In this document: one piece after another, positions 201-43,767 of the stretch | How positions within the stretch are numbered: position 1 is the stretch's first letter | Layout: the number at the start of each line of letters is the position of its first letter | Assembly: GCA_020137815.1 (NCBI GenBank) | Contig: CM035351.1 | Location: 5,642,001 to 5,706,000, forward strand | Direction: 5' to 3' | DNA length: 64,000 nucleotides | Origin: Hormiphora californensis | Taxonomy: Eukaryota > Animalia > Ctenophora | Made by a program: the position numbers and the translations under genes | The notes under the pieces: generated by a model | Told to the model about the DNA's origin: nothing | The model's input: only the letters and a program-made list of their open reading frames with translations | Database searches by the model: none

Positions 201-1503
201 CTTTATCAGCTTCCTACTGCACTTGTAATCCCATACCCTTCTCACACACAGTGATCACACACAAACAAGAGAGATAAATCATATACATGCACATATATAA
301 TACAAAACCCTCAAAGTGCTTCCTAACACTATTTAATTGGGTAGAACTCGCTTCATCAGAATAGAATTAGAAAACAAAAAACAGAAATTATAGCCGAAAT
401 ATGCGACTGTAGCCTTCTGTGTCCAAATATATATTAGAAAGTAATTACCTTGGTGGTAGTGGGTGTTTTCCTCTTGAAAAGTTTTAGATTCTTAAACCAA
501 TATGTCATGTTAACACACACTAATTCTCTGACATAGCACCTTCTACACGCATACCCAGATAGATTGTTATACACAGACACTCATTTTCAATAGTTTTCAA
601 GGTTACAAAAAGGGTTTCAGCGGAGAATTAGAAAGCAGAATTTAACGAAATATTGATATATAAAACAGATACAGCAGCAGGTAATGCAACAGAAATCAGA
701 GCTAACAATTACAATTTACACATGTATCTCTACTAAACAGACAAACTTACAGGGGGCTCTGAAACTTGTATACAGGAACGAAAGAGCAGATTATAAAACG
801 ATGAAAACTCGCTACGCATCATGAGAGATGGATCACCATTCCCTAGGGGGTACAGGGTCATAAGTCAATTGGTAAAAAGAATAAATCTGAAATAAGTGGG
901 ACTTCAGGAGGCGAAAAACGGTTGAAAACTTAATGGAAGTACCCCATAAAGACAGTAAAATTGCCTTAACAAGTGCGAGATATATGCCAAAGTACATTAG
1001 GAATGTCTTTAGCATTCTAGCAATGTCTGGCGCGACAGGGAAGTGCCATTTCCTTCCTTGTCGTAAAAACTCGAAAAATCAAAAAGCGAGACTCAAGTTT
1101 TCAAACAGCCGGCGTGGCGGATCGAGATGGATTTCGGAACACTGATGCGCGCCGCTGCGCACCACCGTTGGCAGCGTGTACATATAATTCTTGCGTATTA
1201 CATCGGTACTGTTGAACTTCCGGTAGACATTGGAAGACCATCGTTTAAGAAAATAAATACCAAACACGTTAATTAAAAACAATTAGCCGTCGTAAAACAT
1301 CCGAGTCAATTAAAACCCAATTAAAATAGAAGACAGCTGCTTGAACAGTGTTCAGGGACAGTTCAGCGCGGCGCCCTTATCGTCCTTGACTGCTTACAAC
1401 CAGTACCTCTCCTTTCCCTGCGCGCATTTCTCCGCTAGTAGCGCAACTCTTCCCACTCTCCCAGTGTTCCCTTTCTGACTGACTGGTCAAGTACCCCCCA
1501 CAC

Positions 1504-1956
1504 TCAGTATGATAACTGTTTCACCTCCTCTAACGTCCTTTCCAAAACACTCCTTATCTGATCTCTCTCCCGTCCATCGGGAGTATCCAACATCTGTCTG
1601 TGTAACCGATTCAAACTGTAACTGTACAGTTTCTTCTGACAAGTTCTAATTGTGCCACCCACATGTACCACATTGCACACGCACCTCTCTCTTCCAACAA
1701 CAACCAGACTTGCCAGACACACCCGGGCATCTTTTTCAAAATCTGCAGGCACCCTAATAACCGCCATCCCTGTCAGAAGCGCCAGGTAAACAACCTTTAT
1801 TCGGTTTTGTGTCCGTCCTAAACCGACCTCCCCGAAATTCTCCTGGACAGCGTTGTAGATGGTTGATAGAAGGTGGGATGGGGTGAGGGAAGTGTGGACT
1901 GTACAGTCAGTGAAGTGCAGCTCCACTAAGAAGTATCGGTATTTTAAACGGACCAT
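1504..1956 (-). CDS. POP5: RNase P/MRP subunit POP5 (Rpp14/Pop5 family), intronless
   Basis: N-terminal MVRLKYRYFLVE motif, 'ENFGEVG', 'VVHVGGTIRTCQK' typical of Pop5; acceptor-like TCCTAG 10 nt upstream of ATG. Confidence 0.92.
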   Translation of the reverse strand: MVRLKYRYFLVELHFTDCTVHTSLTPSHLLSTIYNAVQENFGEVGLGRTQNRIKVVYLALLTGMAVIRVPADFEKDARVCLASLVVVGRERCVCNVVHVGGTIRTCQKKLYSYSLNRLHRQMLDTPDGRERDQIRSVLERTLEEVKQLSY

Positions 1957-2241
1957 CAGGATAGAGCTAGGAGTGGTGACTTATCATTGGGAGCTAAAGG
2001 GAGTCAATTAGTTAATTACTAAAATGGCACTTCCTGCAATACATTAGTTGTTTGAAAATAAAATATACATTTTATACAAGTTTATACAGTGATATAAACA
2101 CTTAGTTACACACATAACTTCTCTCTGACCTCTGAAAGTTAATATCTGATAGGAGAATACAGTGTTCAGCTGTACACTTCAATCACCAGTCTGTATCTGA
2201 CCTTCTTTCCAAGTATAAAATATCCCAAGCATACCCCGTCC

Positions 2242-2360
2242 TTCACTCTGATTTATTCGAAATATCCAGCTCCTGTTCATTCTGATTTACTGGACATATC
2301 CAGCTCCCGTTCATTCTGATTTACTGTACATATCCCTCCGGTTCATTCTGATTTACTGGA
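2242..2360. repeat. ~34-bp tandem repeat (3-4 copies) overlapping the CSTPP1 stop codon/3'UTR
   Basis: TTCATTCTGATTTACTGGACATATCCAGCTCCCG-like units. Confidence 0.75.
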
Positions 2361-3131
2361 CTTGGCCTCACAGTTTTCCAAGCACTGACTCTTCTTAGGC
2401 AGAGCTCCAATACTGCCATTGATAGTATCACTGTTCGCAATACCCAGGAGATATGTATAGAATGAGGCCTTCTGGGTCTTTCCTAATATCCTATGAATCA
2501 CTCGAATTGAGGGGTGATGATAATGGTTGTTAGCGATCATATCAGTTATCCTATCTAGAAAGATGCCACTCTCAACTCCCTCTAACCGCGGTGTCGCTCC
2601 ACTCTTCTCGTTCCCACTGCCCGCTGATAGGGAGAGATACAGCTCCCTGCAAGCACTCAGGAACTCGTTATAATAAAACTGAACCTGGAAGGCGTATAGG
2701 AAATCCTGAAATGCCATCAGACAATCTGACACAGCATCATCCATTAGAATTATCCGAGCCGCTGATTGGACAATTGTGAAAGGGAAATCAGGGCAGAGAA
2801 GTTGGATTAGGGCATGGTACTCCTTGGCTGTTAACATGTCACCATGGTTACCAATGGTCCGATAACACTTCCAGAATAGTTTCACAAAACTGGCCCTGTT
2901 GTGTGGGGTGATGGAGACGTAGGAGAATGTCTGATGTACTACGTGGTTACCCTGTGATACCCTACTGAAATAGTCAGATAGAAACCGGTGGGGTTGGAGC
3001 TTGGGGTCACTGTCTCGTATAGCGAAGAGGGAGGAGAGGGCGTGGGACAGGTAGGTCATGATGTGGTGGGATTGAAGGTATGCTTCCGGGGTCTGGAGGA
3101 ACCTGTCCTTGGAGTCCGTTGAGGTACTCAT
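2343..3131 (-). CDS. CSTPP1: Centriolar satellite-associated tubulin polyglutamylase complex regulator 1 (C11orf49/UPF0705), intronless
   Basis: Motifs TPHNRASF, LLCPDFP, AARIILMDDA-DCLM-F-DFL-AFQ-QFYY-EFL match recalled human C11orf49. Confidence 0.9.
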   Translation of the reverse strand: MSTSTDSKDRFLQTPEAYLQSHHIMTYLSHALSSLFAIRDSDPKLQPHRFLSDYFSRVSQGNHVVHQTFSYVSITPHNRASFVKLFWKCYRTIGNHGDMLTAKEYHALIQLLCPDFPFTIVQSAARIILMDDAVSDCLMAFQDFLYAFQVQFYYNEFLSACRELYLSLSAGSGNEKSGATPRLEGVESGIFLDRITDMIANNHYHHPSIRVIHRILGKTQKASFYTYLLGIANSDTINGSIGALPKKSQCLENCEAKSSKSE

Positions 3132-3654
3132 GGTGGTCTGTACCTAGGAAGCTGGATGGGGTTAGAAAGAAGTAGGGCGTGGAAGACACTGATCAGTTGG
3201 GGGTAAAGAGTTTTCGTTGTGGGGCAGCAACTTTCTATAGAATAGGAGGTAAATCCGGCCAGGTTATAATGCAGAATAAACAGCTAATTTTGCCTGTGTG
3301 TTTATAAATTACAACAGTTACCTTACAAATCAGATTACATAACAAAATTGTCCGTTCCCTGCCATCATAAACATACTTCTCTTTTTCTGAACTCTTTCAA
3401 TACTCTCTCAACCTTCCCCTCTCTCTCTCATTATTTCTCTCCTTCATCTCTCCCCCTATCTCTCTTTAATAATGTCTCTCTTCTGCTTGTTGCTTCAATA
3501 ACAATGACTTAATTACATGAGGGACTCTTTACCCACTCTTTACAGTATGACCACTTTCTCTCCCCTCCCTAACTTCTATTCCTCAAAACAACAACAATAC
3601 ATCCCTTACTCGACCCTCTCTCACATTATAACAACACATTCCCACTATTCAACA

Positions 3655-5685
3655 TCAATTATACTGCACTGTCTCTGATGATGAACCACCACCACTACCC
3701 TGTCTGAGGCTCAGCCTCTTCACAGTCTCATAACCCAGTATAATAAGGAAGGAGCTGGTGGACATGCTCAGTGCACGTGCTGATAGTCCTTTAACAAACA
3801 GTCCAATACCGTCCTCTGACCACAGTTTCCGAGTTACATACACTACCGATCTGCTGCCACCGACCTGAGAATAAAGAGGGGGGATTGTGAGAGGGGGAGA
3901 CTAGAGGGAGGGGTGTGAGAGAGGGGCGTGAGAGGGGTGTGAGAGGGGGACAGGGGATTGTGAGAGAGGGGGAGATATATGATTTACTTAGAAGATCTCA
4001 TATTTATAACAAACTTTTGTCAGATTATGTAGAACTATTCTGTCGAATTCTACAACTATATTCTAGAACTATATGATGAATTATGAATCACGAAATTCCA
4101 ATCAAATATATTTTACCGGGAGGTGTTAATTATTTACCTGAATTCTAGTTCGAATGATATCCAGGGGGTTCGTTGCAACTGCCGATATAACTCCACTCAT
4201 AACTCCACTAACTGCCTGTACAGGCATCTTATGGTGCCCTTGACTATCTGGTGCTACATACCGTCCAGAGTGGGCCAACTGAGAGAGTTTTTACAGTCAG
4301 CTGATATAACTAGTTACAGTTAGTCGGCAGGCATTAATCATATAATGGTTTACATGCCACTACTGCACCATCGTGACTCAGGTGTATACAACATGTGTAA
4401 TGTACAACTCGGGACATGTATAATGCCCAGAACATGTGTAACTCAGATCACATGTGTAACTCAGATCACATGTGCAACTCAGATCACACTCACCAGACAG
4501 TTATAGGTAGCCCACCAGATGCCGCTAGTGGGGACATTACTCATCAGACTGACAAGGTACCCCCGGTAGAAGCCACTCAGCCCGTCTTTCACCATGATCT
4601 TCCTACAGATCCCCAGTAGGGTGTGGTCAGCAGGTTTAGCAGCCACAGGAGCTCCATATTTTGAAGATGTCATCTCCTTCTGACGTAACATTCCCTGTAA
4701 AGATATACAGTGTGCAGTGAGGAGAAGGGACAGAGAATATGTATAATTTCAGAGGACAGTGGTTTTTTTATCTCCAGACCCAACTGGGGCCGGGCCTGGG
4801 GGGAGTGGGAACTAGATAATTACCAGTATCTGTAATCTCTGTGTGACCACATCAGCAGGAACTGACAGGGTCTGACCAGCCACAGAGGCAACCGCACCAG
4901 GCAACAATCCCTGAAATAAGGGGGTTCGATTTACAACAGGAACCGACCGAAACAAGTAAACAACCAATCAGAACTCGTTTTTAGGTCACGTGACTGGTTA
5001 TCAGCCAATCAGGGACCAGTATTTCCTGATTCGGTCGGTTCCTGATTTACAAAAACTGGTTGGAAGACCATACATGGTCATGACTCATGAATCTAAAGTG
5101 CTGTTATTGCGACACACTCTGTATTTACAATGGCCCCGCCCCACTCTCTCCGTACCTGCATAACTACGTTGAGGTGGTTGCACCTGTGTTTTGCATACTC
5201 GTATGTTGTAATGTACACTTGACCAAAGAGGACTCCCAGGGCGAATATGGGAAAACCACGGTAAAATCCAAGTATTCCCTCTGATTTAAATACCTGGGAA
5301 CGGCACCATTAAAAACACGAAGAAGGAGACAGAGAAAGATAGATAGATGCAGATGAGAGTTTGAAAGTGAAGTTTATAGCGGTGTTTCGTTAAAATACCT
5401 TAATAAATGCATCAAATGATCCTCTATAGACTGAAGTCCCCCTTTGAACTTGGAGTCGTGTTTTGATTAGGTTGGTGGGGTAGACACAGAGCCTGATACC
5501 CAGAAATACGGTACATCCCCAAAAATAATACCTGATGGAAATCACAGTTAGCTTTTAGTTGGGTGATATTTTGTTCATAGTTGTTAGCGGTCTGTAAATC
5601 TATAATTAACTCACTTTGATTTATCTAGGTCGTTCCAGACGATTTGTCGAGGACTGGATGAGGGAGAAGAAGTTTCGGAACTCAT
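3655..5685 (-). CDS. SLC25A44: Mitochondrial carrier SLC25A44, 7 exons (approx 5615-5685, 5399-5531, 5156-5293, 4824-4911, 4493-4694, 4138-4278, 3655-3864)
   Basis: Manual splicing gives IVWNDLDKSK-YYF...YPTNLIKTRLQVQRGTSVYRGSFDAFIK...VPADVVTQRLQ...NPLDIIRTRIQ...GYETVKRLSL; three Px[D/E]xx[K/R]-type carrier motifs; GT-AG introns. Confidence 0.9.
4937..5044. mobile_element. hAT-type MITE (108 bp) in an SLC25A44 intron
   Basis: 15-bp TIR CAGGAACCGACCGAA / TTCGGTCGGTTCCTG; 8-bp TSD ATTTACAA (4929-4936, 5045-5052). Confidence 0.9.
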
Positions 5686-5994
5686 AGATCTGTTTTAGTT
5701 GGTTGAGAAGTTTGGGGTCGGGACCCTATTGGGACCCACCTCCTATGTCCAAGTGTCATACCATCCCTAAAAAGCAGGTTGAGTTTTCTGGCAAGTTTGA
5801 GATCTAATAAACGCCAATAATTTCAACAAAAACATTCTTCTAAATCAGAAGTTTCAAACCGTAAAACATAACTGTGAATATCACATACTCGTATTTGTAC
5901 AAAAAGGAGAACCACCTCACACCAGGCTCACTGTGAGGTCACAGTTTAGGTTGTGTAGCTCACACGCGTTGTGAGGGTCCGGTAGAGCATTGTT

Positions 5995-6645
5995 TCATTT
6001 TCCAAGTACACCCTGGTACCGCTCAGCAACATCCTCCCAATTAACAATATCCCATATCTTTCCCACATACTCTGGTCGAACATTCTTGTACTGCAGGTAG
6101 TATGCATGTTCCCAGACATCGAATCCCAACAGTGGCACTAGTCCGGTTGTAGCGAGGAGGGGATCCTGATTAGCACATTTAGCAATACCAAGCCGCTTAG
6201 TGTTAGGATCAACCCCTAACCAGGCCCACCCGCTACCCTGAACTCCGATCGCAGCTGCACTCATCTCGGCCTTGAACTTATCGAATGATGAGAAAGTGGA
6301 GGAGATGGCATCCCCCAGAGCACCATCTGGAACACCTCCACCATTTGGGCTGAGGTTGTGCCAGAAGATGGAGTGGTTGATGTGACCACCTGCATTGAAC
6401 ACCATATCCCTTTGACAGGCCATCACAGTTGAGATATCCTTAGCCTCGACCGCTGCCTCCAGTTTGGGGACGACATTATTGAGGTTGGTAACGTATGTGT
6501 TGTGATGTTTGGAGTGGTGGATCTCCATGATCTCTCGGTTCACAACGGGCTCAAGAGCATCGTAGGAGTAGGGAAGTTCCGGGAGTGTGTAGAGAGACCG
6601 CCGGGAGCAGGAGCGAGATAGCGCTCGTAGTGAGCTTTGGAGCAT
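5995..6645 (-). CDS. SOD2: Mitochondrial manganese superoxide dismutase, intronless (true start likely MLQSSLR at 6645)
   Basis: [50 protein letters not shown]; N-terminal mitochondrial presequence; TTTCTAG acceptor 5 nt upstream. Confidence 0.97.
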
Positions 6646-6823
6646 GATACCTAGAAAGAGAGAGGATGTGTTTAGATTGTAATTTGAGTAGGGGAGGGGT
6701 TGAACGAGGGTTGGAGGATTAAAAGACACATTTGTTGCAGTAAAAAAGGATAAATAGAGATCTTGATACAACTCATTTCTTCTGATATTGCTCCATCGTC
6801 CTTCGGAGAGCGAAGGGAAATAT

Positions 6824-6885
6824 GTGACCATGGTAACTTGTAACCATGGTAACTAAAAACCATGACAATTTGTAACCATGGTAAC
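6824..6885. promoter_or_regulatory. Three RFX X-box-like palindromes (GTGACCATGGTAAC, 2x GTAACCATGGTAAC) in a short direct repeat
   Basis: Match to the GTNRCC-AT-GGYAAC consensus; function untested. Confidence 0.35.
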
Positions 6886-7839
6886 TAAAAACCATGACAA
6901 CAGGATGTCTCATGGTATGTGAGAAAAGAATGTGGTATGAACCAGTATACAAATTACACACGGTCCCCTAGCAGGTTTCTCTCTCTCTCATCTCCACAGG
7001 AATGGGAACATAGCAAAAGCGTTCGAATTTCTCATCAAGACCATCTACTTTTTAGTTTAGGAATAATTTTTTAATCTAGGTTGTAATACAATGGACCAAT
7101 TGCGTTTTAAAGAGTCGCTTATCGTCTTCAGACTATCGTAATTTCAAAAGAGCAACTAATGCCGAACGCGAATGACTATGGCTGAAAAAGTAACCAAGTA
7201 AAACTTAGGGCTTAAAAGATTTAGCGATTCGATGGATTTTTACTAAAATTTGTGAAATTTAGGTAAGGAAGTGTTTTGTAAATTTTAGGGAAGGAATTAT
7301 TTTGTTGAAAACGGCTTTTGATTGTTTCCCAAAAAGGTGAAATAGATTTGGTCAACAATTAAAGTGGTGGTCAATCATTAAAATTGGTACCCCGTACCAA
7401 AAAAAGTTCACACACACACACAAACAAACACACACGCACACGCACACACAATCTGCAAACACAAACAAACAAAAAGTTGGTAAAAAAATTCACGATCTCT
7501 CTTTGGCTGTCGCATACTCGCATTTTCCAAACTACACCTCACATCAACAACAACATATAATATTTATTACCAAGAGGACAAGAAAGTAAGGACTGACAAT
7601 AAATGGTGTCTGTATCTCCTTGTCTCAATACCCTGACAAAACTAAACATACATTCACTTTAATAATCTCAATCTCTGACAAATTTACCGGCCTTCACTTC
7701 TCACAGGTCATTCAAAATATAATCCCAGCTAAATCATCCATTCTTTCAGCTTCTACACAGTTTAACATAATTTCATTTTCTCTCACAGCAGTATTTCATA
7801 TCCCAAAAGATCCCTCTGAACCGAAAAAAAGCATTGTAA

Positions 7840-7934
7840 ACCAAGTAAACAACCAATCAGAGCTCGTTATTTAGGTCACGTGACTGGTTATCAGCCAATC
7901 AGGGACCAGTATTTCCTGATTCGGTCGGTTCCTG
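7840..7934. mobile_element. Second, 5'-truncated copy of the CAGGAACCGACC hAT MITE
   Basis: Near-identical to 4950-5044; flanks CATTGTAA / CATTGTAG resemble an 8-bp TSD. Confidence 0.8.
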
Positions 7935-8381
7935 CATTGTAGTGTGCGTGGTGTGTTTCTCAGTTATTTGGGACATGTTATAGGAGTGTCTTTTTGTAGT
8001 GGAATGAACACTTATTGACGACTTGTATCTTTGCATACTGCAAGGTCGTTCATCTAATACAGTTTGACACCTTATCCCACTAACACACTATTGGATGCCA
8101 CACGCATATCATTTATTTAACTCCTTCAATATCCTCTCTCTTCTAAACATTGCAGTTCGTACAAGCACCATTTTACAGACACAGACAGGTAGAGGGAGCC
8201 AACTACTACTCCACACATAAATAAGATTTTAGAGGCCAATATAATAACTTCTCACTCAGCACATTTTGACAGCCAGATCTCGAGAAAATTGTGTCTGCGT
8301 CATTTGTGATGGTTTGCTTGTGTGTGTGTGTGTGGTACTGGATCTTAGTAACGGGGTACACAATTTGATTTTCTTCTTCAA

Positions 8382-9944
8382 CTAAGATGCCTCCGTTGGT
8401 GCAGGGTTGTGTTGTCTGCGGTTGTTCTGGTGCCCACCGCCACTGTGACCCCGTCCATCGACCCGCCGGTAACTAGATCTCCCCTCGTCTCCAGATCTCT
8501 CATAATAATTCCTCCTCGGCTGTCCCTGGTCCCTGTTATCTCTCCTGTCGTAACCACGGTGATCATTGTTGTAGCTGTTGTACTGCCTCTGTTGGGTGTT
8601 CTCAGCCCTGTTATCTCGGTTATTATACCCTCCATCGCTGTTATTGTATCGGCTATCCCGGAAGTCTCGTCCATTTCCATAAGAGTTGTAATCCCTCCTG
8701 TTGTTGTTATACCCACCATCTCGACCACTATATCCCTCGTGCCGGTTGTTCCTATAACCTCCCCGGTTGCTATGGTAATAGTTGTCAGAGCGTCCATACC
8801 GGTTATTGTTGTACCCTCCATTGTTGTTGTAGTACCGGTTATCTCCACCCCCGTAGTTGTTATCCCGCCCTCGGTAGCTGTTACCCTGGTAACTGCGGCT
8901 CCTGTAAGTCGACACTCCCTCTCCAAATGTCTCGCTGTTTAGCTGTTTCTCCTGGTGCCAGTTTGGTGGCCTCCGCCTCTCACCCTTCTCCTTCTCCAAA
9001 GCCTCACAAGATATGGTATCGAAGAACGAGGTGGCCTTATCATAGCATTTGTCATCCGGATCCTCACCTGTGCTTCCCGGTGCAGCATTATTATTTGTCG
9101 TTTCACTTTCCTCTCCTGGCGCTGCTGGTTCAGCTGCTGCCACCTCAGGTTCATCAGAAACACTCAATTTAGCGAACTTTCTTAGTTCCTTCTCCAGTTC
9201 ATTTTTGTCGAATTTAGAGTTAGCGGAGGCAAAATCAAAATCGCTCTCGAAGCTCAGAGTTTTGTTGGTGAACGGCATCCCTTCCCTGTGAGTGTGTCGA
9301 CGATTGTTGTAGCTATTCTTGCGTTGTGCGTTCCTACCTCGCCCACCTCTGCTGTAACTTCCCTCCTCCCTGTCATCTTCTTGCTTTCCTTCCTGCTCCT
9401 TGTTGGGTCCGGGGGAGGCAGGCTTGGCAGAGTCGGTGTTACCTCCAACATTTCCCTCCTGGAAAGAATTAGCTGGGGTTGGAGCCGCGGCACTTCCTCC
9501 TTGTCCGAATGGCACAAAGGTTCCGGAGTTGTTTCCTTGGTTGTTGAAGGAGTTGTTGGGAGAGAAGCTGCTGTTAAATCCGCTAGCAGCAGGAGTTGGA
9601 GCAGGGCTTGCCTCGCTAGGGGTCCCTCCGACCTCACCTCCCATCATGTGACCGTTGGGTGGGGGTCCTTGTTGAGCTTCAATTATTGCCGGGTCCTGGG
9701 GCTGGCTCTGCTCGAACACGTGCAGATCGGCAATGTCAGTTCCCCGAAACTTGACATAGTTGTAGGTTGTTTTCGAGGGTGGGTACTGCGTTGGGCAGGG
9801 CCTGTTTTCAGTACCGAAGGACATGACATTTTTCAGGGCGACCGTAGATTCCGAGGCGTTGATGTCAACTAGGGTTCCTAGGTAACGAATTCCCGCCTTG
9901 GAGATCAAACTGATCTTGCTGCCAACGAAATTGTTGCCACTCAT
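8382..9944 (-). CDS. LSM14: LSM14/RAP55/Scd6 P-body protein, intronless
   Basis: N-terminal LSm domain (GSKISLISKAGIRYLGTL...SFGTENR), FDF (DFDFASANSKFDK), FFD (YDKATSFFDTISCE), TFG (LNSETFG), RG/Y/N-rich tail. Confidence 0.96.
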   Translation of the reverse strand: MSGNNFVGSKISLISKAGIRYLGTLVDINASESTVALKNVMSFGTENRPCPTQYPPSKTTYNYVKFRGTDIADLHVFEQSQPQDPAIIEAQQGPPPNGHMMGGEVGGTPSEASPAPTPAASGFNSSFSPNNSFNNQGNNSGTFVPFGQGGSAAAPTPANSFQEGNVGGNTDSAKPASPGPNKEQEGKQEDDREEGSYSRGGRGRNAQRKNSYNNRRHTHREGMPFTNKTLSFESDFDFASANSKFDKNELEKELRKFAKLSVSDEPEVAAAEPAAPGEESETTNNNAAPGSTGEDPDDKCYDKATSFFDTISCEALEKEKGERRRPPNWHQEKQLNSETFGEGVSTYRSRSYQGNSYRGRDNNYGGGDNRYYNNNGGYNNNRYGRSDNYYHSNRGGYRNNRHEGYSGRDGGYNNNRRDYNSYGNGRDFRDSRYNNSDGGYNNRDNRAENTQQRQYNSYNNDHRGYDRRDNRDQGQPRRNYYERSGDEGRSSYRRVDGRGHSGGGHQNNRRQHNPAPTEAS

Positions 9945-9962
9945 CCTAGTGGGAATAGTGTC

Positions 9963-10260
9963 TCTGTTAGTGGGTATCAGGGGATAGTGTATCTGTTAGT
10001 GGGTATCAGGGGATAGTGTATCTGTTAGTGGGTATCAGGGGATAGTGTATCTGTTAGTGGGTATCAGGGGATAGTGTATCTGTTAGTGGGTATCAGGGGA
10101 TAGTGTATCTGTTAGTGGGTATCAGGGGATAGTGTATCTGTTAGTGGGTATCAGGGAATAGTGTATCTGTTAGTGGGTATCAGGGGATAGTGTATCTGTT
10201 AGTGGGTATCAGGGGATAGTGTATCTGTTAGTGGGTATCAGGGAATAGTGTATCTGTTAG
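9963..10260. repeat. 29-bp minisatellite (~10 copies) immediately upstream of the LSM14 ATG
   Basis: CTGTTAGTGGGTATCAGGGGATAGTGTAT repeated. Confidence 0.95.
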
Positions 10261-10482
10261 AGTGGGTAATCGAAACTTTTTTGGGTTGAATTTGGGCACA
10301 ATTAATATTGTGAATTAGCTGCAAGGGGTATTGGGGATAAGGGTAGAGAACAACAGTGAAACTTGGTTAATCAGCTGAGTCAAAATTTACTATCAAAAAC
10401 AATATAAATAACAAAAACAAAAAGGGATAAAACTGAACAAACACACGTTTCGTACAGAGGGGATGATAAAAATTAAAACAGT

Positions 10483-13400
10483 TCACCACGTCGTATTTCG
10501 GAGGAGAGATTTGGCAAGATAACCTGGTATCACACCTTCATTCACAATACCCTGCATAGCAAGCTCAGATTTAGCCAGAGAACATGTCAAGTCTGTCAAT
10601 TCTTTTGAAACACAGGTGGCGGTCTCGGATTCCTTTACCAAAAACGTCCTATTTTCAGGCGGAATAGGTGGCTTGTCCAACTTTGCCTCATATCTCTGAA
10701 TACTCTCCCAAATATCATCAATGTCCTCACGAGTCATACTAACAGCCCTCTCCCGCTCCGCTCTCCTGTCCTCCTCTATGTCGATCAACTCGTTGTAAAC
10801 TAGAGCCCGTTCCACCATCTGTTCTCCGTTTAGGGTCCCCAACTCGTTGAGCTGCCACTCGAGTAAGGCCGTGTGAGGGTTCAAAATCACCGCATTCTCG
10901 ATAACATGGTGGATTATCTGATTCAAAATAGAACACCACTGAACCCCTGACTGTTCCACAATACCACAGATCCGGGACAGCAGTAGCTGGGAGCTGAAGG
11001 TCTTGATTGAGCGACAGAACTCTAAACAATCCTCTGGTGAGTCTGGTTCTCCACGGAACGCCGGTAAACACATCCCCTCCAACTCTGAGGAGAGGGAGGA
11101 CATTCTCTCCGTGGTGTTCCAGTCAACCAGCACATCAGAGCGCTGATCAAACCAACTGGGCCAGTTTATGGAAGTGAGGTCAGGAAGTCGAACAGCCCGG
11201 GAGAGATACCGGAGGATGGAATTGTAGAATGTTAGGATTTCGTTGGGATTGACTGAGTAGGCGGGACATTTACTGAGAACAACCTGTTTAGACAGCAAAA
11301 CATCAGTTAGTTTGACACATACCACCGACTGAAGTAGGTCCCTGATGTCCACAAGTTTGAAAGGTTGGAAGGGAATATCGGTTGCCAGGTAACGAGCGAT
11401 GGTGGAGTTGAGTGTTTTGTACAACTTACAACATCCCATGTTTGTCAGAAACTCGGGTTGTTGTATAAATGTAACTCCATCCGGACATGAGGGAGGTTGG
11501 GAGGGAGCCACTAAAACAACTGGACTGGAGCACTCAGGAAGGGGTCGGGTTGTGTTTGCTACTACCACGTGACATCTCTTACACGCCATTTTAGCAGTGT
11601 GAATCGTGGCTCTAGTCATTATTACCACTTGTATTTTTAGTGTCGTGGATCCGATGAAGACCTTCTCAGCGAAATAGTCACCAATTTCAGAAAGGGATGG
11701 TAATCCAAAGGAATCGAGGAGGAACTGAGACAGTTTTGAATCTACCGTGTCCAGTAGAAGGGTGATGTATCCTGCGGAAAAGGGTGGAGGGTTGTTGAAA
11801 CACTTGAGAGGGATACCCCTGATTGCCTTAGCTTCCTCAAGCAGGTCCATTCGCATTTTTAACCGCTTTTGTACATCAAACTTCTTCTGGAAAGACTTGG
11901 TAGGTGATGTCAGGTCGATGTTAGCTATCCGAGAAATAGGTAGCAGGGATGGGTCACGCTGCTTGGGCCGGCCACTTCCAAGAAGATTATCCAGTACTTG
12001 AGCAGATGATAAGGAGACAATTCGTGGTGGAATGTTGTCCAAGGCATGGCGTTTAGCATTGATCTTCTCGCATCTCTTCTTCCACATGGTGAAGAAGTAT
12101 CGCTTCTGAACAGTACTCTGCTCCAGCGTCTCTTTGAGCCGTTTCTTCTTCTCGGCAGTCACCTCTGCCACAGTGCGAGGCACCAGGACACTCAGCTCCC
12201 TCTGGACAGTGGTGTTCACAAGATCAGATAGCACCGACTCACACGATCTCGAAACGGAGATATCAAACTCGGATAACATTCGGTTATTTGAATCGAGGAG
12301 GGTTTTTAGTTCATCTTTTAGGACAGTCTCCATGATTTCACTGTGGGACTCCTTTATAAAACTATCCGATGCTTCCTCCCAGACAACTTCTTTGACAAGA
12401 TCTTCTAGGAACAGCCGGGGACAAACATCCAGGAAGAGATCTCGCGTTGCTGAGTTTATCTTATTTTTCCTCTCCTCTTTCAACTCTTTCAGCTCTTCTC
12501 TCAGACCCCTGCGACATGCCTCGTCCAGCAGCTCGACAATAATATGCCTCTTCGCAAACTCAAGCGCTTTCTGCTCCTGCAAACACTCCATCAGCATGCC
12601 AGTTATCTCCCTCTGACAAGCCTCGGACAGCAGAGAAACTGTAACATACGCTAGCGATTCTGTGAGATGGGGGATCTGGGGTAGGTCCTTCCGTGGAGCA
12701 GCAACAGGGGCAAAAGTAGGGGCGAAGGTAGGAGTAGGTGTGGCAGGAATGGCGGAACCCAGGACACTGTCTGGTAGCACCTCAGCCGTGTAAAAGATCT
12801 TGCCCGGTGTAGTGGTTATCTTTTGGTTAACACTCGATATCTGGTCAGTCAATGTGTTCTGGTTAACCGTATAACAGTGCTTCTTGAACCTCACAATTTT
12901 ATCTTTCACCTCTACCTCCATAGACTCGACAAATCCCACGGTCTCAACGAGGGAGTCAAATCCAAGCATTCCTTGGAGTTTTTCCAGCGGGTACTCAGTT
13001 ACAGATTGAGTGGTATGAGAATTGATCAGGGCTCCCAAAGCTCTCTGTCTCACAATGTTGATGTAACGGTAGAGGATACAGCAGGCAAGGAGAGGCCCAC
13101 ATCTGAATAACTTGAAGAACCGGACAAAGTTCTTGGTGTTGTAAGCGTTGTAACACTGAACTGCGTACCGCACCTCATCAGACCTCATCACGGCGATAGG
13201 ATAATTTGATACCTCTCTCATTATCTTTCCACTGTCCAGATTTAGAAGAATATGGTACATCCTAAACTCCGCCTCATTCGGGCAACTCCCAGCTACCCGA
13301 TCCCGATCCTCATATATGTGACGGAGACTTGTCATCGTCTTCTCAAGGTTCTCATTGTTGTGTCTCTCATCATAGTTGTGGTCAGGGCCGGCGAGGTAGT

Positions 13401-14334
13401 AAGCGGAGAAAATGTGAAACCTGGCAATTGTTTCTAGGACAATGACAGCTCGGGGATCGCTTAGTCGCTGTTGAGTGATATCCTTACGTATTGCACGTGT
13501 CCGGTCCCATAGAAAACTGTACATTTCCTCCAGGTTGTCATCCTGACTGGAGAGGAGATCTAGGAACAAGTACTGGGTGGTTTTCTGAAGGATTATTGAG
13601 GGTCGCAAGTCCTCTGGTTGAGATTCATCCTGATCAGCGGAGGAACGTTGGAATTCTTTGACTGCCAGGTGATGCTGAAACTGCTCTTCTTTGTCCGTTT
13701 CAAACACCGACCAGATTCGCTTTTCCAGCCGGGACAGGAACTCTTTCTGAGAGCACATGTGAGAACAAGTTCCATGTTTCTTGGTATACACGTGATCTTG
13801 GTTTTCAAACCGGACAGGAGCAGAGAAATCCTTCTGAATCTGCTGGCTATTCTGTCGTTGGAGGGAAACATTACGTCTACCAATGGATCTCCTACAGCTA
13901 TTATCATCACTGCCCCTCGCTACAGCTGGTGATCGTTCCCTTGATGAAGCCCTCTCCTCAGAAGCAACTGAGAATATATTCCTCTTGGCGTCTGAAGGCC
14001 CAGTTGCAGCCGCAGCAGAGAATGAGAAAGGGTTGTCAGATGAGGGAGCGGGTCTCTTGTTCGATGTAACCGGTGGAGGTAGTGGAAGGGGTGGAGGTAA
14101 TGGGAGGGCTGGTGCAATCTCAATAACATCCTGATCCTCAACATAGTGAACCTCTATCTCCTTCTGCTGTTTCCCCTCCTGATCCTGACCCCGCACATAG
14201 GAGTAAGGATTACTGCTGCCCCCTGGAGGATCGCTTCCCCCGTGAGAACTGCGCCTCTTAGCTCGCTGCTGGTACTGTTGGAGAGCCTGCCGCTTCTTCT
14301 TCTGGCAATACTGCTTCTTGATAAAACTTTCCAT
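10483..14334 (-). CDS. MCM3AP: GANP/Sac3 (TREX-2 mRNA export scaffold), intronless 1283 aa
   Basis: SAC3/GANP motifs: GTCSHMC...E, AVKEFQRSSADQ, DLRP, FLWDRTRAIRKDITQQ, ARFHI, CPNEAEFRMYHILL, NFVRFFKL. Confidence 0.93.
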   Translation of the reverse strand: MESFIKKQYCQKKKRQALQQYQQRAKRRSSHGGSDPPGGSSNPYSYVRGQDQEGKQQKEIEVHYVEDQDVIEIAPALPLPPPLPLPPPVTSNKRPAPSSDNPFSFSAAAATGPSDAKRNIFSVASEERASSRERSPAVARGSDDNSCRRSIGRRNVSLQRQNSQQIQKDFSAPVRFENQDHVYTKKHGTCSHMCSQKEFLSRLEKRIWSVFETDKEEQFQHHLAVKEFQRSSADQDESQPEDLRPSIILQKTTQYLFLDLLSSQDDNLEEMYSFLWDRTRAIRKDITQQRLSDPRAVIVLETIARFHIFSAYYLAGPDHNYDERHNNENLEKTMTSLRHIYEDRDRVAGSCPNEAEFRMYHILLNLDSGKIMREVSNYPIAVMRSDEVRYAVQCYNAYNTKNFVRFFKLFRCGPLLACCILYRYINIVRQRALGALINSHTTQSVTEYPLEKLQGMLGFDSLVETVGFVESMEVEVKDKIVRFKKHCYTVNQNTLTDQISSVNQKITTTPGKIFYTAEVLPDSVLGSAIPATPTPTFAPTFAPVAAPRKDLPQIPHLTESLAYVTVSLLSEACQREITGMLMECLQEQKALEFAKRHIIVELLDEACRRGLREELKELKEERKNKINSATRDLFLDVCPRLFLEDLVKEVVWEEASDSFIKESHSEIMETVLKDELKTLLDSNNRMLSEFDISVSRSCESVLSDLVNTTVQRELSVLVPRTVAEVTAEKKKRLKETLEQSTVQKRYFFTMWKKRCEKINAKRHALDNIPPRIVSLSSAQVLDNLLGSGRPKQRDPSLLPISRIANIDLTSPTKSFQKKFDVQKRLKMRMDLLEEAKAIRGIPLKCFNNPPPFSAGYITLLLDTVDSKLSQFLLDSFGLPSLSEIGDYFAEKVFIGSTTLKIQVVIMTRATIHTAKMACKRCHVVVANTTRPLPECSSPVVLVAPSQPPSCPDGVTFIQQPEFLTNMGCCKLYKTLNSTIARYLATDIPFQPFKLVDIRDLLQSVVCVKLTDVLLSKQVVLSKCPAYSVNPNEILTFYNSILRYLSRAVRLPDLTSINWPSWFDQRSDVLVDWNTTERMSSLSSELEGMCLPAFRGEPDSPEDCLEFCRSIKTFSSQLLLSRICGIVEQSGVQWCSILNQIIHHVIENAVILNPHTALLEWQLNELGTLNGEQMVERALVYNELIDIEEDRRAERERAVSMTREDIDDIWESIQRYEAKLDKPPIPPENRTFLVKESETATCVSKELTDLTCSLAKSELAMQGIVNEGVIPGYLAKSLLRNTTW

Positions 14335-14476
14335 ATAATGGCCCTGAATGAAGGATAGGGAGTTAGGTCAGGTGCTACAATAACACACACAGATTATCAT
14401 ATATCATTTGATAAAAGAAGGTTATTACAATACACAAGCACACGGGATGAAATGATAAAGACACAGCTACATAAAT

Positions 14477-15391
14477 CTACAAAGTTCCAGGTTTATTGTC
14501 ACTAGGAGTTGGCGGTTTACTGGGTGTAAGAGACAGGGCTTTCCGTCTCGCACTCTCATTAGTCCTCCGCCGCTTTGTTTTGTCCACCCGGTGCTGAACT
14601 GATCTAAGTGTAACTTTCTCTGTGATGAGATCTGGATAAAGAATGTGAGAGTCCCTCCTCTTCCTGTATGTGTTCAACATGTCTCTAAGAATAAGGTCCG
14701 TACTGGGGGCCTCCTTGTGTCTATTGAAAACATCCTCAAATGACTCTTCTTCGTCTGAGGAATTTGAGTAATCCTGAGTAGATAACTTGACAGATAGCCA
14801 TATCTTCTCGTATTCCCGTTTAGCAGACTCTTTTAGCCGCCTCTCTCTATCACAAACAACGACCGGATATGGGCCAGTAGCAATACTGCCAACAAAGGCC
14901 GTGTGAGAATGCACTGCTTCGTGTAGAACCGCTTTCCGAGAAAACAGGATTTCTGATAGAAGATCCCGGTAATGAGTCTGTCGTTTTTGTCGGTATTTAG
15001 TATACGATGCCTGGTGTTCTATCGCAAGGAGTTCTGCTATTCGGGGGTTAAAGTATCCAAGCTGCAAGCGTCTGTAAAACTGATTGACTGGGTTACCAAA
15101 TTTAAAATTTCTGCCACTGAGCAGCAGCTGTACAGTCTCTTCCTGAAGATGATAAGTATCTTGGGCACTGGCAAAGTGTGGTAAGTACTGCCGTAAATGT
15201 TCTCTTTCACCATCATCGAACAAAAACGTCCAGGTATCACAGTTGAGGACAGAAGTCAGGATGTTTGGGTTGGTGTAGAGGAGAAGCGGCATGTTTATAG
15301 CACAATCGCGATACATAGCAACCTCTGTAGGGGTGCTGTTACTGGTGGAACATGACCCTGCATACTCAGGTTCTTCCCTGGAGCAAGACAT
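14477..15391 (-). CDS. NFRKB: NFRKB-like DEUBAD-domain protein (short, ~304 aa; likely start MSCSREE at 15391)
   Basis: TW..LF...EREHLRQYLP.F...EETVQLLLSGRNFKFGNP...GYFNP matches the NFRKB DEUBAD domain; TCTTAG-CC-ATG acceptor context. Confidence 0.8.
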   Translation of the reverse strand: MSCSREEPEYAGSCSTSNSTPTEVAMYRDCAINMPLLLYTNPNILTSVLNCDTWTFLFDDGEREHLRQYLPHFASAQDTYHLQEETVQLLLSGRNFKFGNPVNQFYRRLQLGYFNPRIAELLAIEHQASYTKYRQKRQTHYRDLLSEILFSRKAVLHEAVHSHTAFVGSIATGPYPVVVCDRERRLKESAKREYEKIWLSVKLSTQDYSNSSDEEESFEDVFNRHKEAPSTDLILRDMLNTYRKRRDSHILYPDLITEKVTLRSVQHRVDKTKRRRTNESARRKALSLTPSKPPTPSDNKPGTL

Positions 15392-16012
15392 GGCTAAGAA
15401 GTGGAGAGCGGAGCCTGAGGAGAGCGGGATTTCGAAATTTTCAGTTCTGAGTTTGCAAACTTGACTCGGCTTCATGTCATGAAACTGTGGTGCGCGTTAC
15501 ATTTTTCAGTAAAATGTGCTGCACAATTGAGTCATTAAAGAGCTGCGGCGAGAAAAAGCCAAAAACGTTGCTGAAAAAGAGCAACTTTAAAATGCGCGCG
15601 CGATATTTTACTGGATCCAAGCGAAATCTGGGTCAGCGATTTTTTCTTGGAATGCGCTGCAGCCCCCTCATGCGCGCACCCCCGCAACGAGGGGACTGAA
15701 GGGAATGCCGCGCGCGCGTTTGGCCTGAGCCCGGCTGGGTCGAAGATAACTTTGCGGTCGAAAAAACGGCGGTGCTTATAACTTTGGCTCCTGTAGTCCG
15801 TTTGACTTGATTTTTTCACCAGTTGTTAGATCTGACGATTATCTACCTTGCTGTTTTTGAGAGAAGTTAATTGGACTTAAGGAGGCTGAGCAATAGCCGT
15901 TGAAAGATGGGTTGTTTTCAAAAAGTGACGTCACAGATTCCTGCAGGGACACCTTTTTTTAAATTTCATTCAAATTTTGATTTTACCGCACTCGATTTTG
16001 CGGAGTTTGGTT

Positions 16013-16131
16013 CATATCTCCTGTTCCTGATAAGATAGAGACCTGAAACCGGTTGCATTTAAAAGCTCTTATCTTCCTCTTTCCAACGCTACCAAAACGA
16101 TTTCTGTACCTTATCTGGAACCGGAGATATG
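16013..16131. repeat. Imperfect palindromic transposon-internal module
   Basis: CATATCTC...GAGATATG ends; related (reverse complement) to 41917-42032. Confidence 0.55.
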
Positions 16132-16330
16132 ATTGATTATGTATTCCCCCCCAGCGCGGTATTCCCTCCAGGCCCCTTATATTATATTATAAGGGGCCTG
16201 CAACGTATGCCAAGATTTTTTCTCAAAAGTGAAAAAATCCCGAATTTTGCGTGTTTTTTTACTTCTGTTTGCAGTTTGAGACAATGTAACGTGAAGAGAA
16301 AGCTAGCAAATTATTTTTTATGTTTTCTGT

Positions 16331-16754: not shown

Positions 16755-17355
16755 TGTAACAGTATGTTCGGACATGCTCCGAGTTTGGTAATTCGGTTAA
16801 GGACCACCGATAACGGTTTTTGCAGAGGAGCTCCACAAGCCGATGTGGTTTATTTCACTTTATTAAGAGTTCCAGATTTCGGAGATAATGAGACTGTTCT
16901 GGCCTGCAAATAACCTATATCAAGAAGAAGAATTGGAGAGAGTATACGGAGCAAGTTTCCTTCACCGCACACCTGCACTGATAGTGATAAGCAGAGACAG
17001 CCTCTACGAAGAAGAAGAAGAAGAAGAAGATAGTGATAAGCCGATAAGGGACCACGACGCCAAGTTGACGGAGTTGCAAGCCCCTGCTCACGTTTTGATA
17101 ACGCCAGTCTGCGACGTATAAATAGCGGCCAGGAGGAACCCGGAGTGTCTCAGAATTACAATACAAAAATTACTTACCACTTTGGTATATCTTGTGTTTT
17201 GATAGTACCTTTCTAGAACAAAACCTGAGACCATCACCACTCACCCTCACTTCACACTATCTAAATACACTCTCACCACACTGGTACACTGTATAGTATT
17301 TAGTTGGAAGCATGTCGAATGGAAACAATACCTTTGACCAAAATGGTGTAGTCGG
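16755..17355 (+). mobile_element. Possible LTR followed by a tRNA primer-binding site
   Basis: Starts TGTAAC, TATAAATA at ~17117, ends ...GACCA then AAA-TGGTGTAGTCGG (tRNA-Ser-like PBS); only one end seen. Confidence 0.3.
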
Positions 17356-17375
17356 GGACGGCAGGGACCCCACAA

Positions 17376-18578
17376 CTGGAGAAAGTGCTTAGTGGAGTTC
17401 CTCAAGGAACCGTACTCGGGCCAATACTCTTCATCATATATGTTGCGGACCTAAACTCAGCCGTTGTACACTCAACAACCAAAACTCTTGCCGACGCTGT
17501 CTGGCGCCGCGACCCATCTGAGCGCACTGTCGCGCGCTCAGATTATTTGAGAATCAAATTGGGGTCTGGCGCCGCCAGACAGTGCCGACGACACTAAACT
17601 CATAAAGGGAATTGAAAGGGAAGTGTCACATGACCAACTCCAAGAGGACCTGACAAAAGTGGGAATTTGGTCGAAGGCCAACAACATGAGTCTGAACGAA
17701 GATAAGTTTGAGGTTTTGCAATACTCTCTCAACAAAACTCAACTACTTAAACAGTTACCATTCACCCAAGACCTCCAAACGTACTATACTCCAGAGGGAC
17801 TCAAGATTGAACCAAAACATTGTGTCCGTGACTTAGGGGTCCAACTGTCAGATGATTTATCCTGGGAACATCAAATAGGAAAAATGACATCTGACGCCCG
17901 AAAGATAAGTGCATGGGTATTGAGGGCCTTCAAAACAAGGGAGGAAAAAACTATGACTATCCTGTACAAAAGTCTGGTCCGCAGTAAACTGGAATATTGC
18001 TGTCCACTATGGGATTCGCCAAAGATCTCTGACATCCAGGACGTTGAAGCAATCCAGCGGAAGTTCACCAAACGGATCAAGGGAATGGCTGAACTAAACT
18101 ACTGGGAGCGTTTGAAAAAGCTGAATTTTACTTCCCTTCAACGCCGCCGAGAACGTTACAGCATCATAATGATGTGGAAGATGGCAAACGGCAACGCACC
18201 CAACAACATCGGCATCCGCTTTTATAACAACAACCATCTCGGGAAAAAAGCGGAGGTCCCAACATGTCCCACAATCACACAGAAGTCAGTCGCGACGAAG
18301 TACCACAACTCGTTTATCTGTAGAGCGACTCGACTATGGAACACACTACCCAGGGAAGTGAACTTAGCGGAAAACCTACCGTCGTTCAAGGTACTACTAG
18401 GGAAATGGATGACGAGATTTCCGGATCGCCCACCGGTTCTCGGATACCCAAAACAAAACAACAATTCAATCTTGGACTGGATACGGATCGTTTCCAGGGA
18501 GGGGGAGGCTCTGTGAGGAACTGACACCTGTGTAGTTTGTACACGAAGAAGATTACAAGATTACAAGATTACAAGATT
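17376..18578 (+). mobile_element. 5'-truncated CR1-clade LINE (RT C-terminal half plus 3' tail), inactivated
   Basis: SGVPQGTVLGPILF, LADD|TK (interrupted), VRDLGV, LYKSLVRSKLEYCCPLW, SLQRRRER, LWNTLP; (AAGATTAC)n 3' microsatellite at 18548-18578. Confidence 0.93.
17497..17582 (+). mobile_element. 86-bp CTGTC...GACAG element inserted in the LINE RT catalytic motif
   Basis: TIR CTGTCTGGCG/CGCCAGACAG; 8-bp TSD TGCCGACG (17489-17496, 17583-17590); removing it restores CTT GCC GAC GAC ACT AAA (LADDTK). Confidence 0.92.
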
Positions 18579-18783
18579 GATCGATTTAAAATTGTCCACT
18601 AAAATACTGGCTATGCAATTAAGGGGGGGTCGGCCGATATTGGCCTTGAATGCCATGTAATTGTCAGTTTGTCCTTGAGAAACATATCATAAAAGTCTTA
18701 TAATGTTAATCGATGATTTTAAATACGAAAAACAGCTTTTAATCGGATGAAGACAGTTGGTAATCGGATAAAGGTTTGTTGAC

Positions 18784-19082: not shown

Positions 19083-19310
19083 CTGGTACTAGGCCAGAAG
19101 ACTATTCTCTTTTTCTGGTACTAGGCCAGAGGACTATTCTCTTTTTCTGGTACTAGGCCAGAGGACTATTCTCTTTTTCTGGTACTAGGCCAGAGGACTA
19201 TTCTCTTTTTCTGGTACTAGGCCAGAGGACTATTCTCTTTTTCTGGTACTAGGCACGAGGACTATTATCTTTTTCTGGTACTAGGCCAGAGGACTATTAT
19301 CTTTTTCTTG
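19083..19310. repeat. 32-bp minisatellite (~7 copies)
   Basis: CTGGTACTAGGCCAGAGGACTATTCTCTTTTT repeated. Confidence 0.93.
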
Positions 19311-20440: not shown

Positions 20441-21670
20441 TTCCCATCTGTGTTCAGAACTTCACTTGAAGAGCTCTTGTACATATTTGTATGCAATTTT
20501 TTTGCTGTCAGAGCATTGACCCATTCTCGTTTCTCTCAAAGATGTTTTGAGAGCTGTGCACTGTGCAGTGTGCTGCTGGGACTGAGAAGAATTATTTCAA
20601 GGTAAATATAGGCACTAGCGTGAGAGTAAGCCGAGTAGTTATTACTATTTGATCACAAAATGATCTCAGAACTTGTACCAGATGTGTTTACTATTTGTAG
20701 AACTGACAGAACTTGTGTTCGACCAAATCCGCTGTGTTGTATTTGTTCATTTGTAGACAATCTTGAACCGTTTGTCCCGCACGAGAGACGGACTTTAAAC
20801 TAGTTATGACAAGTGTGTCCTATTCCAGATTCCTAAATCTCAGAACAGAGAAGTGAGCAGTGTTTTAGTGTAGACATTGATCTGGGTGACGTGATCAATG
20901 CACAATTGTCGAATGCAGTGTTTTCCTACGATGCATGTCAAAAACTCTATGTCTCTCCATGCAACTCAAAACACACGGCCCCATTACTCTACAAAATGTA
21001 ACGCGCGGAGTCTGAATCATGTTAAGTAAGTGAAAGTACACAGTTGACAGCGCCACATGATTTACATGCGTGCGCGGCGGATTGCAAACCCGATCCGGAT
21101 CCATGATATTGAGATTGACAGCAGTACCAAATGATATTCGATTGCTTTACTTTTGGTTTTAACTTAAAAAGTGGTTATAAAGTATAGTTTATTGAAAAGC
21201 GAATTAGCAATAACACTGGCAGAAAGGGTACCAGGACGCACAATAGATTGCAGTGCACCTTCATTAGCAATAGCAATAGCATGGTCTTCTTTCATGTTTG
21301 GATTTAACTTGTTTCCGAAACAATGGATGGGCTGTCTCTGTGCAACAAAACAGTGTCGCTACACAAAGACAATTCATTCGGGGCTCACTCGGTTCTTATA
21401 ATAGGAATAGCAGCACTATTGTAATATGTAGAACCGTCCGACACATAACATATATATTCATGGAAACTGCAATAGCACTGCAATGGCACTGCAATAGCGC
21501 CACACAATTCCGGATTCATACTGCCGGCAGTCCCCTCCCCCTCGAGTCTATAGATTCACACTATACTCTGTCTCTAGATATCCTGTATCATGTGGTTACT
21601 TGTACCCCCCTTACTCAACAAGTGGTAACCACATTGTGGCTATAGGTGATGGGCGTGTTAAAATAAACAG

Positions 21671-29616: not shown

Positions 29617-29663
29617 GTGTGTAACACTGTGACAGAGATAATGCTTGTTGTGACAGGTAGCAG

Positions 29664-29726
<63 letters not shown>

Positions 29727-30179
29727 AGAGAAAGAATTGTCATGTGATACTCATACAGAGAGAGGTGTGTGTGTGTGTGTGTAACATCGAGAACCTTTCA
29801 GAGAGTGCGCGCGAGTGGGTCTACAATTGTGATATCGCGCGTTACAGCTACGGGTCTCATCTCTCTGCTTCTGTGATTTCACCACACACACAGAGTCAAG
29901 ACATTACATGTACAAAAGTGAGAGAGCTGGAAGACTCCCGGGAACGCAAGCAATGACATTCAGAAGGATTGGGGGTAGTTGAGACCAGATTAAAACACAA
30001 TAATTTTCTAACAAATAGTTCACCGTAATTAAGAAAAGAAAGTCATCAGTAAAATAAACTTGGTCAGATATATATATTCCCACACAAACTTTAGTACATA
30101 ATTCGTACACACAAAATTACTAAAGAGTCATTACACAAAATTAAGTTAGAGACACACATAGTTAAAAAGAACAACTTCA

Positions 30180-43281: not shown

Positions 43282-43325
<44 letters not shown>

Positions 43326-43329
43326 TCTT

Positions 43330-43383
<54 letters not shown>

Positions 43384-43627: not shown

Positions 43628-43681
<54 letters not shown>

Positions 43682-43729
43682 TCTCTCTTTCTCTATCTTT
43701 CTTTCTCTCTCTCTCTTTCTCTTTTTCTT

Positions 43730-43767
<38 letters not shown>

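Follow-up and report, generated by a model that had tools for sequence, protein, structure and literature searches.

What does it mean when unrelated genes stand head to tail on one strand of a ctenophore chromosome, each with a 3′ splice acceptor directly before its start codon? We addressed this question in a 64,000-nucleotide (nt) stretch of chromosome 2 of the pleurobrachiid Hormiphora californensis (assembly GCA_020137815.1, contig CM035351.1, positions 5,642,001 to 5,706,000), referred to here as the window, whose minus strand carries at 1504–15391 seven unrelated, mostly intron-less housekeeping genes: NFRKB-like, GANP, LSM14, SOD2, SLC25A44, CSTPP1 and POP5 (Table 1). A preliminary description, made from the sequence alone, had proposed that this row forms one or two operons resolved by spliced-leader (SL) trans-splicing. 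On the evidence of gene order in other ctenophores, the downstream genes SOD2 > SLC25A44 > CSTPP1 > POP5 are an evolutionarily constrained, co-oriented block. Operon status for the row, judged from its sequence, is credible but unproven.

Strand reading together with domain and orthologue matches bore out the seven minus-strand genes and their identities. Pfam supports the POP5, SOD, LSM14 and SAC3/GANP assignments, CSTPP1 is identified by named orthologues and PF27900, and the NFRKB-like protein matches human NFRKB in its DEUBAD domain (PDB 4UF5_B; E value 3 × 10−20). The SLC25A44 identity comes from exon-by-exon checks and not from a joined model: Mito_carr matches each of exons 2–7, with its repeats in the expected order, and exon 5 aligns to Mnemiopsis SLC25A44. 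Because other ctenophores' proteins begin at the same N-terminal sequence, the ATGs chosen for POP5, SOD2, CSTPP1 and GANP are right; the NFRKB-like start is ambiguous, its frame being open up to a further ATG at 15475. An exact look-up of the six single-exon proteins in a protein collection returned no identical entry. All six stop-to-ATG gaps were re-measured at the lengths originally claimed (Table 1), and the row packs one gene into about 2 kb, whereas the genome as a whole, with 14,265 genes over 110 Mb, averages one in about 7.7 kb.

Table 1 Features of the gene row and its surroundings, in window coordinates (aa, amino acids; CpG o/e, ratio of observed to expected CpG).
Feature	Position	Strand	Details
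NFRKB-like gene	14477-15391	-	304 aa; DEUBAD domain only; head of row
NFRKB-like acceptor TCTTAG	15394-15395	-	2 nt before ATG 15391
NFRKB-like > GANP gap	14335-14476	-	142 nt; CpG o/e 0.23
GANP acceptor TTCAG	14344-14345	-	9 nt before ATG
GANP/SAC3 gene	10483-14334	-	Single exon, 1283 aa
GANP > LSM14 gap	9945-10482	-	538 nt; CpG o/e 0.20
LSM14 acceptor CACTAG	9946-9947	-	1 nt before ATG
LSM14 gene	8382-9944	-	Single exon, 520 aa
LSM14 > SOD2 gap	6646-8381	-	1736 nt
SOD2 acceptor TTTCTAG	6651-6652	-	5 nt before ATG
SOD2 (Mn superoxide dismutase)	5995-6645	-	Single exon, 216 aa
SOD2 > SLC25A44 gap	5686-5994	-	309 nt
SLC25A44 pre-ATG acceptor AAACAG	5690-5691	-	
SLC25A44-like mitochondrial carrier	3655-5685	-	7 exons
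SLC25A44 exons	5685-5615, 5531-5399, 5293-5156, 4910-4824, 4694-4494, 4278-4138, 3864-3655	-	
SLC25A44 > CSTPP1 gap	3132-3654	-	523 nt
CSTPP1 acceptor TCCTAG	3144-3145	-	12 nt before ATG
CSTPP1 (C11orf49)	2343-3131	-	Single exon, 262 aa
CSTPP1 > POP5 gap	1957-2342	-	386 nt
POP5 acceptor TCCTAG	1967-1968	-	10 nt before ATG
POP5 (RNase P/MRP subunit)	1504-1956	-	Single exon, 150 aa
Unique CpG-rich stretch downstream of POP5	900-1503	-	CpG o/e 1.12; 3′ limit of cluster
Mostly unique CpG-rich stretch upstream of NFRKB-like	15392-15640	-	CpG o/e 1.25; candidate promoter region
570-bp repeat	15641-16221	.	250 nt upstream of NFRKB-like ATG
Miniature inverted-repeat transposable element (MITE) copies, ~120 nt	~4929-5051; ~7800-7925		SLC25A44 intron 3; 1.7-kb gap
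TGTAACGCGC	15492-15501; 20997-21006; 29837-29846	-; +; -	Three window copies vs 0.04 expected for 9-mer core
Non-LTR (long terminal repeat) retrotransposon fragment	17300-18580	+	5′-truncated; reverse-transcriptase C-terminal part; (AAGATTAC)n tail; between two divergent genes
UBC-domain gene	ATG 19394	+	Next gene upstream of NFRKB-like; acceptor-like CAG 18 nt before ATG
PIKfyve stop-GTPBP10 ATG gap	29614-30170	-	~550 nt; second same-strand row of window; GCGCGC, TGTAACGCGC, (CT)n
41-nt-unit satellite	42434-44746		2.3 kb; rich in ATCGAT palindromes; CpG o/e up to 7

Part of the gene order of the row recurs in other, deeply diverged ctenophores. In Mnemiopsis leidyi, the protein KAL5255828.1 (ACHWQZ_G011156, 739 amino acids) is a fused SOD2-SLC25A44-CSTPP1 model, with SOD2 at residues 1–209 (70% identity), then SLC25A44, and CSTPP1 at residues 480–738 (80% identity), and POP5 (KAL5255827.1, ACHWQZ_G011155) carries the adjoining locus tag on the same 20.87-Mb chromosome. 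The Bolinopsis microptera protein XP_063694661.1 joins the tail of the last SLC25A44 exon to CSTPP1 and shares its chromosome with POP5 (XP_063694657.1). Chimeric models such as those of Mnemiopsis and Bolinopsis are the kind of annotation error commonly made where same-strand genes are tightly packed. When contigs were matched by size, an indirect match from which strand and spacing are not readable, the POP5 and CSTPP1 protein clusters had ten equal-sized contigs in common (3000, 4227, 4366, 4507, 5211, 34507, 78215, 134202, 412826 and 2960320 nt). Five of these measure 3000–5211 nt, so that in several further ctenophores the two genes appear to be no more than a few kb apart. By the same measure GANP and CSTPP1 have equal-sized contigs of 157,911 and 513,444 nt; the more distant ctenophore concerned has a GANP with just 37% identity.

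Order is thus conserved beyond background as SOD2-SLC25A44-CSTPP1 with POP5 adjacent in Mnemiopsis, and as CSTPP1-POP5 in several taxa. Since the largest collinear blocks between Hormiphora and Mnemiopsis hold only four genes (PMC8527503), the SOD2-POP5 block stands at the top of surviving collinearity. Tight conservation was found for these downstream four genes only, the upstream three being represented just by the GANP-CSTPP1 contig match: in Mnemiopsis we could not place orthologues of GANP, LSM14 or NFRKB-like beside the block, and no GANP-NFRKB fusion was seen among the GANP proteins of other ctenophores.

We next consider the acceptors. All seven quoted strings were found verbatim before their ATGs, with a YAG (Y, pyrimidine) 1–12 nt upstream at every gene and a pyrimidine-rich tract at six of the seven. 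In a chance test that scored a YAG 0–14 nt before an ATG and directly after a 15-nt stretch of at least 60% pyrimidines, six of the seven gene starts qualified compared with 13% of 2005 window ATGs (binomial P ~ 3 × 10−5), so that the acceptors are real and non-random, as first described. Across the seven genes no ATG lies between acceptor and start codon, while ATGs in the 130 nt before the acceptors are not depleted (13 observed, 15 expected), a combination that fits the splicing away of upstream sequence. The acceptors of the row end in TAG at five of seven genes (five TAG and three CAG among eight when GTPBP10, at 29624, is included), whereas the cis-intron acceptors of SLC25A44, PIKfyve and GTPBP10 are CAG in nine of nine cases, including all six of SLC25A44. 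Small as the sample is, this contrast (Fisher P ~ 0.01) hints that the presumed trans-splice acceptors form a distinct class.

The species provides the matching machinery. The published Hormiphora leader is represented in the genome by 698 copies of its 3′ part, compared with 4 for a control; the original work counted 718 leader copies in the 110-Mb assembly, found at least 56% of Iso-Seq reads to carry the leader, and reported that more than half of annotated transcripts start with AG, as expected for leader addition (PMC8527503). Our copy count and that study substantiate the claim that the row sits in a lineage with SL trans-splicing, and the trans-splice reading of the pre-ATG acceptors, already-known biology for the species, is very likely correct. 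Because SL trans-splicing is so pervasive here, such acceptors are to be expected, and because the head gene NFRKB-like, which necessarily has its own promoter, has one too, they do not on their own signal an operon. The preliminary description had counted an acceptor before each ATG as operon evidence; this argument is not supported, the acceptor being a general SL mark in the species.

A whole-genome search for retrocopies of the seven genes, either leader-headed or spanning two genes, found none and returned only matches to the 570-bp repeat, the MITE and low-complexity sequence. The leader is open in one frame, with which LSM14, SLC25A44 and POP5 are in phase; among database proteins no leader-encoded N-terminal extension was found, and the N-terminal piece of LSM14 gave no match as a query. 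Metagenome scans with the GANP protein and with the leader-SOD2 junction string were both blank.

We turn to the gaps. The shortest, of 142 nt, contains AATAAC at +51 and a TGTGTGTGTT run at +86, followed by CTAAC, a pyrimidine tract and CAG; AATAAA is absent from it, as had been stated, and so is ATTAAA. It reads like a compact 3′ end directly abutting branch point, tract and CAG, with little promoter space. In the GANP > LSM14 gap, 310 nt are a 29-nt minisatellite (10.7 copies, 9951–10260), the unit of which contains CTAAC..AG and so yields 11 acceptor-like sites in tandem upstream of LSM14. The 1736-nt gap holds an AATAAA at +265 after the LSM14 stop, a MITE copy, (CA)n and a 32-nt repeat at 6827–6901, and is likely a unit boundary. 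Inside the SOD2-POP5 block, the three gaps have CpG o/e values of 0.26–0.51 and show only short low-complexity repeat matches, with no high-copy repeats found in them. A 34-nt tandem repeat (3.6 copies, 2242–2361) re-copies the last codons and stop of CSTPP1, and the 3′ untranslated region (UTR) of this gene therefore opens with extra copies of the gene's end. Our scan of the gaps for poly(A) signals found the canonical hexamers mostly absent, although ctenophore signals may differ from those scanned, and Rfam and tRNA scans of the gaps found no non-coding RNA.

The gaps also differ in composition from the ends of the row. CpG o/e ranges from 0.20 to 0.61 across the six internal gaps, like the SLC25A44 introns, compared with values above one in the unique sequence on either side (Table 1). 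GCGCGC occurs in both flanks and in no internal gap, and the sequence TGTAACGCGC is likewise absent from the internal gaps. The downstream flank at 900–1503 may serve the minus-strand gene that follows as its promoter. We regard the CpG contrast as suggestive only, because CpG-rich patches are not established as promoter marks in this species.

Taken together, these features are in our view best explained if the 1.7-kb gap divides the row into a pair of operon-like units, SOD2 > SLC25A44 > CSTPP1 > POP5 and NFRKB-like > GANP, the latter perhaps extending to LSM14, an arrangement to which we give slightly less than an even chance. Each mRNA would be matured by SL trans-splicing at the pyrimidine-rich AG 1–12 nt before its ATG, as the sequence signature and the published biology suggest, and everything upstream of the acceptor, several upstream ATGs included, would be discarded. 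The SOD2-POP5 block would most likely yield one polycistronic precursor, cut into monocistronic mRNAs by trans-splicing and polyadenylation, while NFRKB-like > GANP, perhaps with LSM14, would be a second unit driven from the CpG-rich region at 15.4–15.6 kb and parted from the first by the 1.7-kb gap. We tentatively suggest, again at a little under even, that SOD2 > SLC25A44 > CSTPP1 > POP5, and probably NFRKB-like > GANP, are true SL-resolved operons and the first for Ctenophora. The earlier proposal of one or two operons possibly split at this gap gains in that the conserved four-gene block begins at the split, whereas the operon itself we can still only infer. Its remark that operons are not known to be well characterized in this lineage also stands: PMC7986045 (2021) states that they were not reported in ctenophores, and our search of a literature collection for ctenophore operons found no paper, later ones included, that reports any.

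Several observations weigh against the operon interpretation, and most of them serve the alternative that the row consists of seven independent genes in a compact region, each gap holding a small promoter and a short outron that is replaced by the leader at the acceptor. Conserved order would then reflect overlapping regulatory sequences or chance retention, and not co-transcription. Five gaps (309–1736 nt) lie above the 250-bp cut-off used to call operons in chaetognaths (PMC12460157), a spacing that only the 142-nt gap satisfies, and these five have room for a compact promoter and outron. Since the head gene has an acceptor too, and the divergent UBC-domain gene an acceptor-like CAG, the signature fails to tell members of an operon from genes that stand alone. 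Trans-splicing affects at least 56% of mRNAs, far beyond what tight clusters could explain, and genes are on average 7.7 kb apart; the majority of SL-accepting genes must therefore be monocistronic. The Iso-Seq-based annotation makes no mention of operons or polycistronic transcripts (PMC8527503). A TATAAAA stands 110 nt before the POP5 acceptor. The ~550-nt PIKfyve-GTPBP10 gap contains GCGCGC and TGTAACGCGC motifs like those of the head-gene flank, so same-strand neighbours can have promoter-like gaps, and a 1162-nt contig carrying the 312-amino-acid Mnemiopsis SLC25A44 indicates that mature monocistronic mRNAs exist. On the comparative side, the contig-size matches are indirect, and the Mnemiopsis fusion may be an artefact of gene prediction; its junction between SOD2 and SLC25A44 does not fall at the predicted acceptor. 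The CpG contrast, too, is subject to the caveat given above. What speaks against seven independent genes is that 142 nt would have to fit a 3′ UTR, a poly(A) site, a promoter and an outron, that the six gaps are CpG-poor like introns where the unique flanks are CpG-rich, and that a four-gene order was kept where the largest shared blocks hold four genes. We consider seven independent genes the main alternative and a serious possibility, albeit clearly short of probable.

A single seven-gene operon, with one promoter upstream of 15391 and read-through of all six gaps, would account for the co-orientation of all seven genes with their pre-ATG acceptors, for CpG-rich unique sequence at the two outer flanks only, and for the apparent presence of GANP and CSTPP1 on common contigs in a distant ctenophore. 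We find it improbable given the 1736-nt gap, with its AATAAA, MITE and simple repeats, the limitation of tight conservation to the downstream four genes, and the failure to place GANP, LSM14 and NFRKB-like beside the Mnemiopsis block. Even less probable is that the acceptors are ordinary cis acceptors of short 5′-UTR introns, with a non-coding first exon in each gap and no trans-splicing. Although about 44% of Iso-Seq reads lack the leader (PMC8527503) and gaps of at least 300 nt could take a small exon and intron, 142 nt cannot reasonably fit UTR, promoter, exon and intron; moreover, the TAG preference before the ATGs differs from the uniform CAG of cis introns, and more than half of annotated transcripts start with AG. 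Chance co-orientation and coincidental AGs are disfavoured and have next to no probability in our view, for while a seven-gene same-strand run has a frequency of ~1.6% per locus, many windows were scanned and an AG within 12 nt is common, neither the acceptor test nor the order kept in Mnemiopsis and Bolinopsis fits such an account.

Operons resolved by trans-splicing elsewhere offer a measure for the two-unit interpretation. The SL2 operons of Caenorhabditis elegans resemble the row in combining co-oriented, unrelated housekeeping genes, an acceptor before each downstream open reading frame (ORF) and conserved order. Intercistronic spacing there is about 100 nt, to which the 142-nt gap comes close, whereas the other five gaps here are 3–17 times longer than is typical in the nematode; in addition, no specialised downstream leader is known here, and the polycistronic precursor of the row is a prediction. 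Tunicates (Ciona, Oikopleura), with their compact, intron-poor genomes, use a single leader type for monocistronic and operon genes, and in both respects they are like the row, but their intercistronic regions are nearly absent where ours span 142–1736 nt. In the chaetognath Paraspadella gotoi, trans-splicing affects about half of the genes, no leader is specific to operons, and operon genes are of housekeeping type, all of which parallels the row; chaetognath operons were called from same-strand gaps below 250 bp together with leader-containing reads (PMC12460157), whereas one gap here is that short and the row is known from genomic sequence. The closest comparison, SL trans-splicing in Hormiphora itself, has genome and leader in common with the row, as well as acceptor AGs at annotated 5′ ends; in contrast to the operon reading, that work regards the leader as a cap-like addition to the 5′ end and leaves polycistronic transcription out of consideration (PMC8527503).

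The surroundings of the row are rich in repeats. Upstream of NFRKB-like lie the 570-bp repeat, a truncated long interspersed nuclear element and the plus-strand UBC-domain gene. The 570-bp repeat is very young and high-copy, with copies 98–100% identical on most chromosomes and more than 2000 first-look candidates, and it contains no ORF of at least 100 amino acids. The MITE has terminal inverted repeats (GGAACCGACCGAA...), two inverted CCAAT boxes and a CACGTG E-box, and more than 600 candidates with 95–99% identity occur genome-wide. Minisatellites or (CT)n at 6823–6901, 9951–10260, 19083–19308 and 29660–29735 directly precede the acceptors of SOD2, LSM14, the UBC-domain gene and GTPBP10, respectively.

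The sequence TGTAACGCGC, which may be a promoter element, has 1038 copies in the genome compared with 186 for a reversed control (5.6-fold). Each of the three window copies precedes a gene start by 20–220 nt and has the same orientation as that gene; GCGCGC(ACTCTC) often follows 40–70 nt on. A crude ORF-orientation test of 20 other copies showed no bias, and for this reason we do not use the motif as evidence. The PIKfyve-GTPBP10 gap is more promoter-like in appearance than any gap of the seven-gene row. Some 1 kb downstream of POP5 another minus-strand gene seems to begin, with a short exon (440–506) that ends in the donor GTAATT near 447 and then a coiled-coil exon, and the same-strand run may continue past POP5, beyond the 1-kb CpG-rich gap.

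Ctenophores are one of the two candidate sister groups to all other animals, and SL trans-splicing has been known in them since 2010. What is new here is the four-gene conservation and the CpG contrast for the row, SL trans-splicing itself being already known. If the operon interpretation is true, operons arose, or were kept, in yet another early-branching animal lineage, and those described here would be the first ctenophore operons, held together ever since the split between cydippid and lobate comb jellies. The interpretation would likewise point to a source of annotation errors, such as the three-gene chimeric Mnemiopsis GenBank model, and would explain the survival of a few small gene blocks amid the scrambled gene order of ctenophores.

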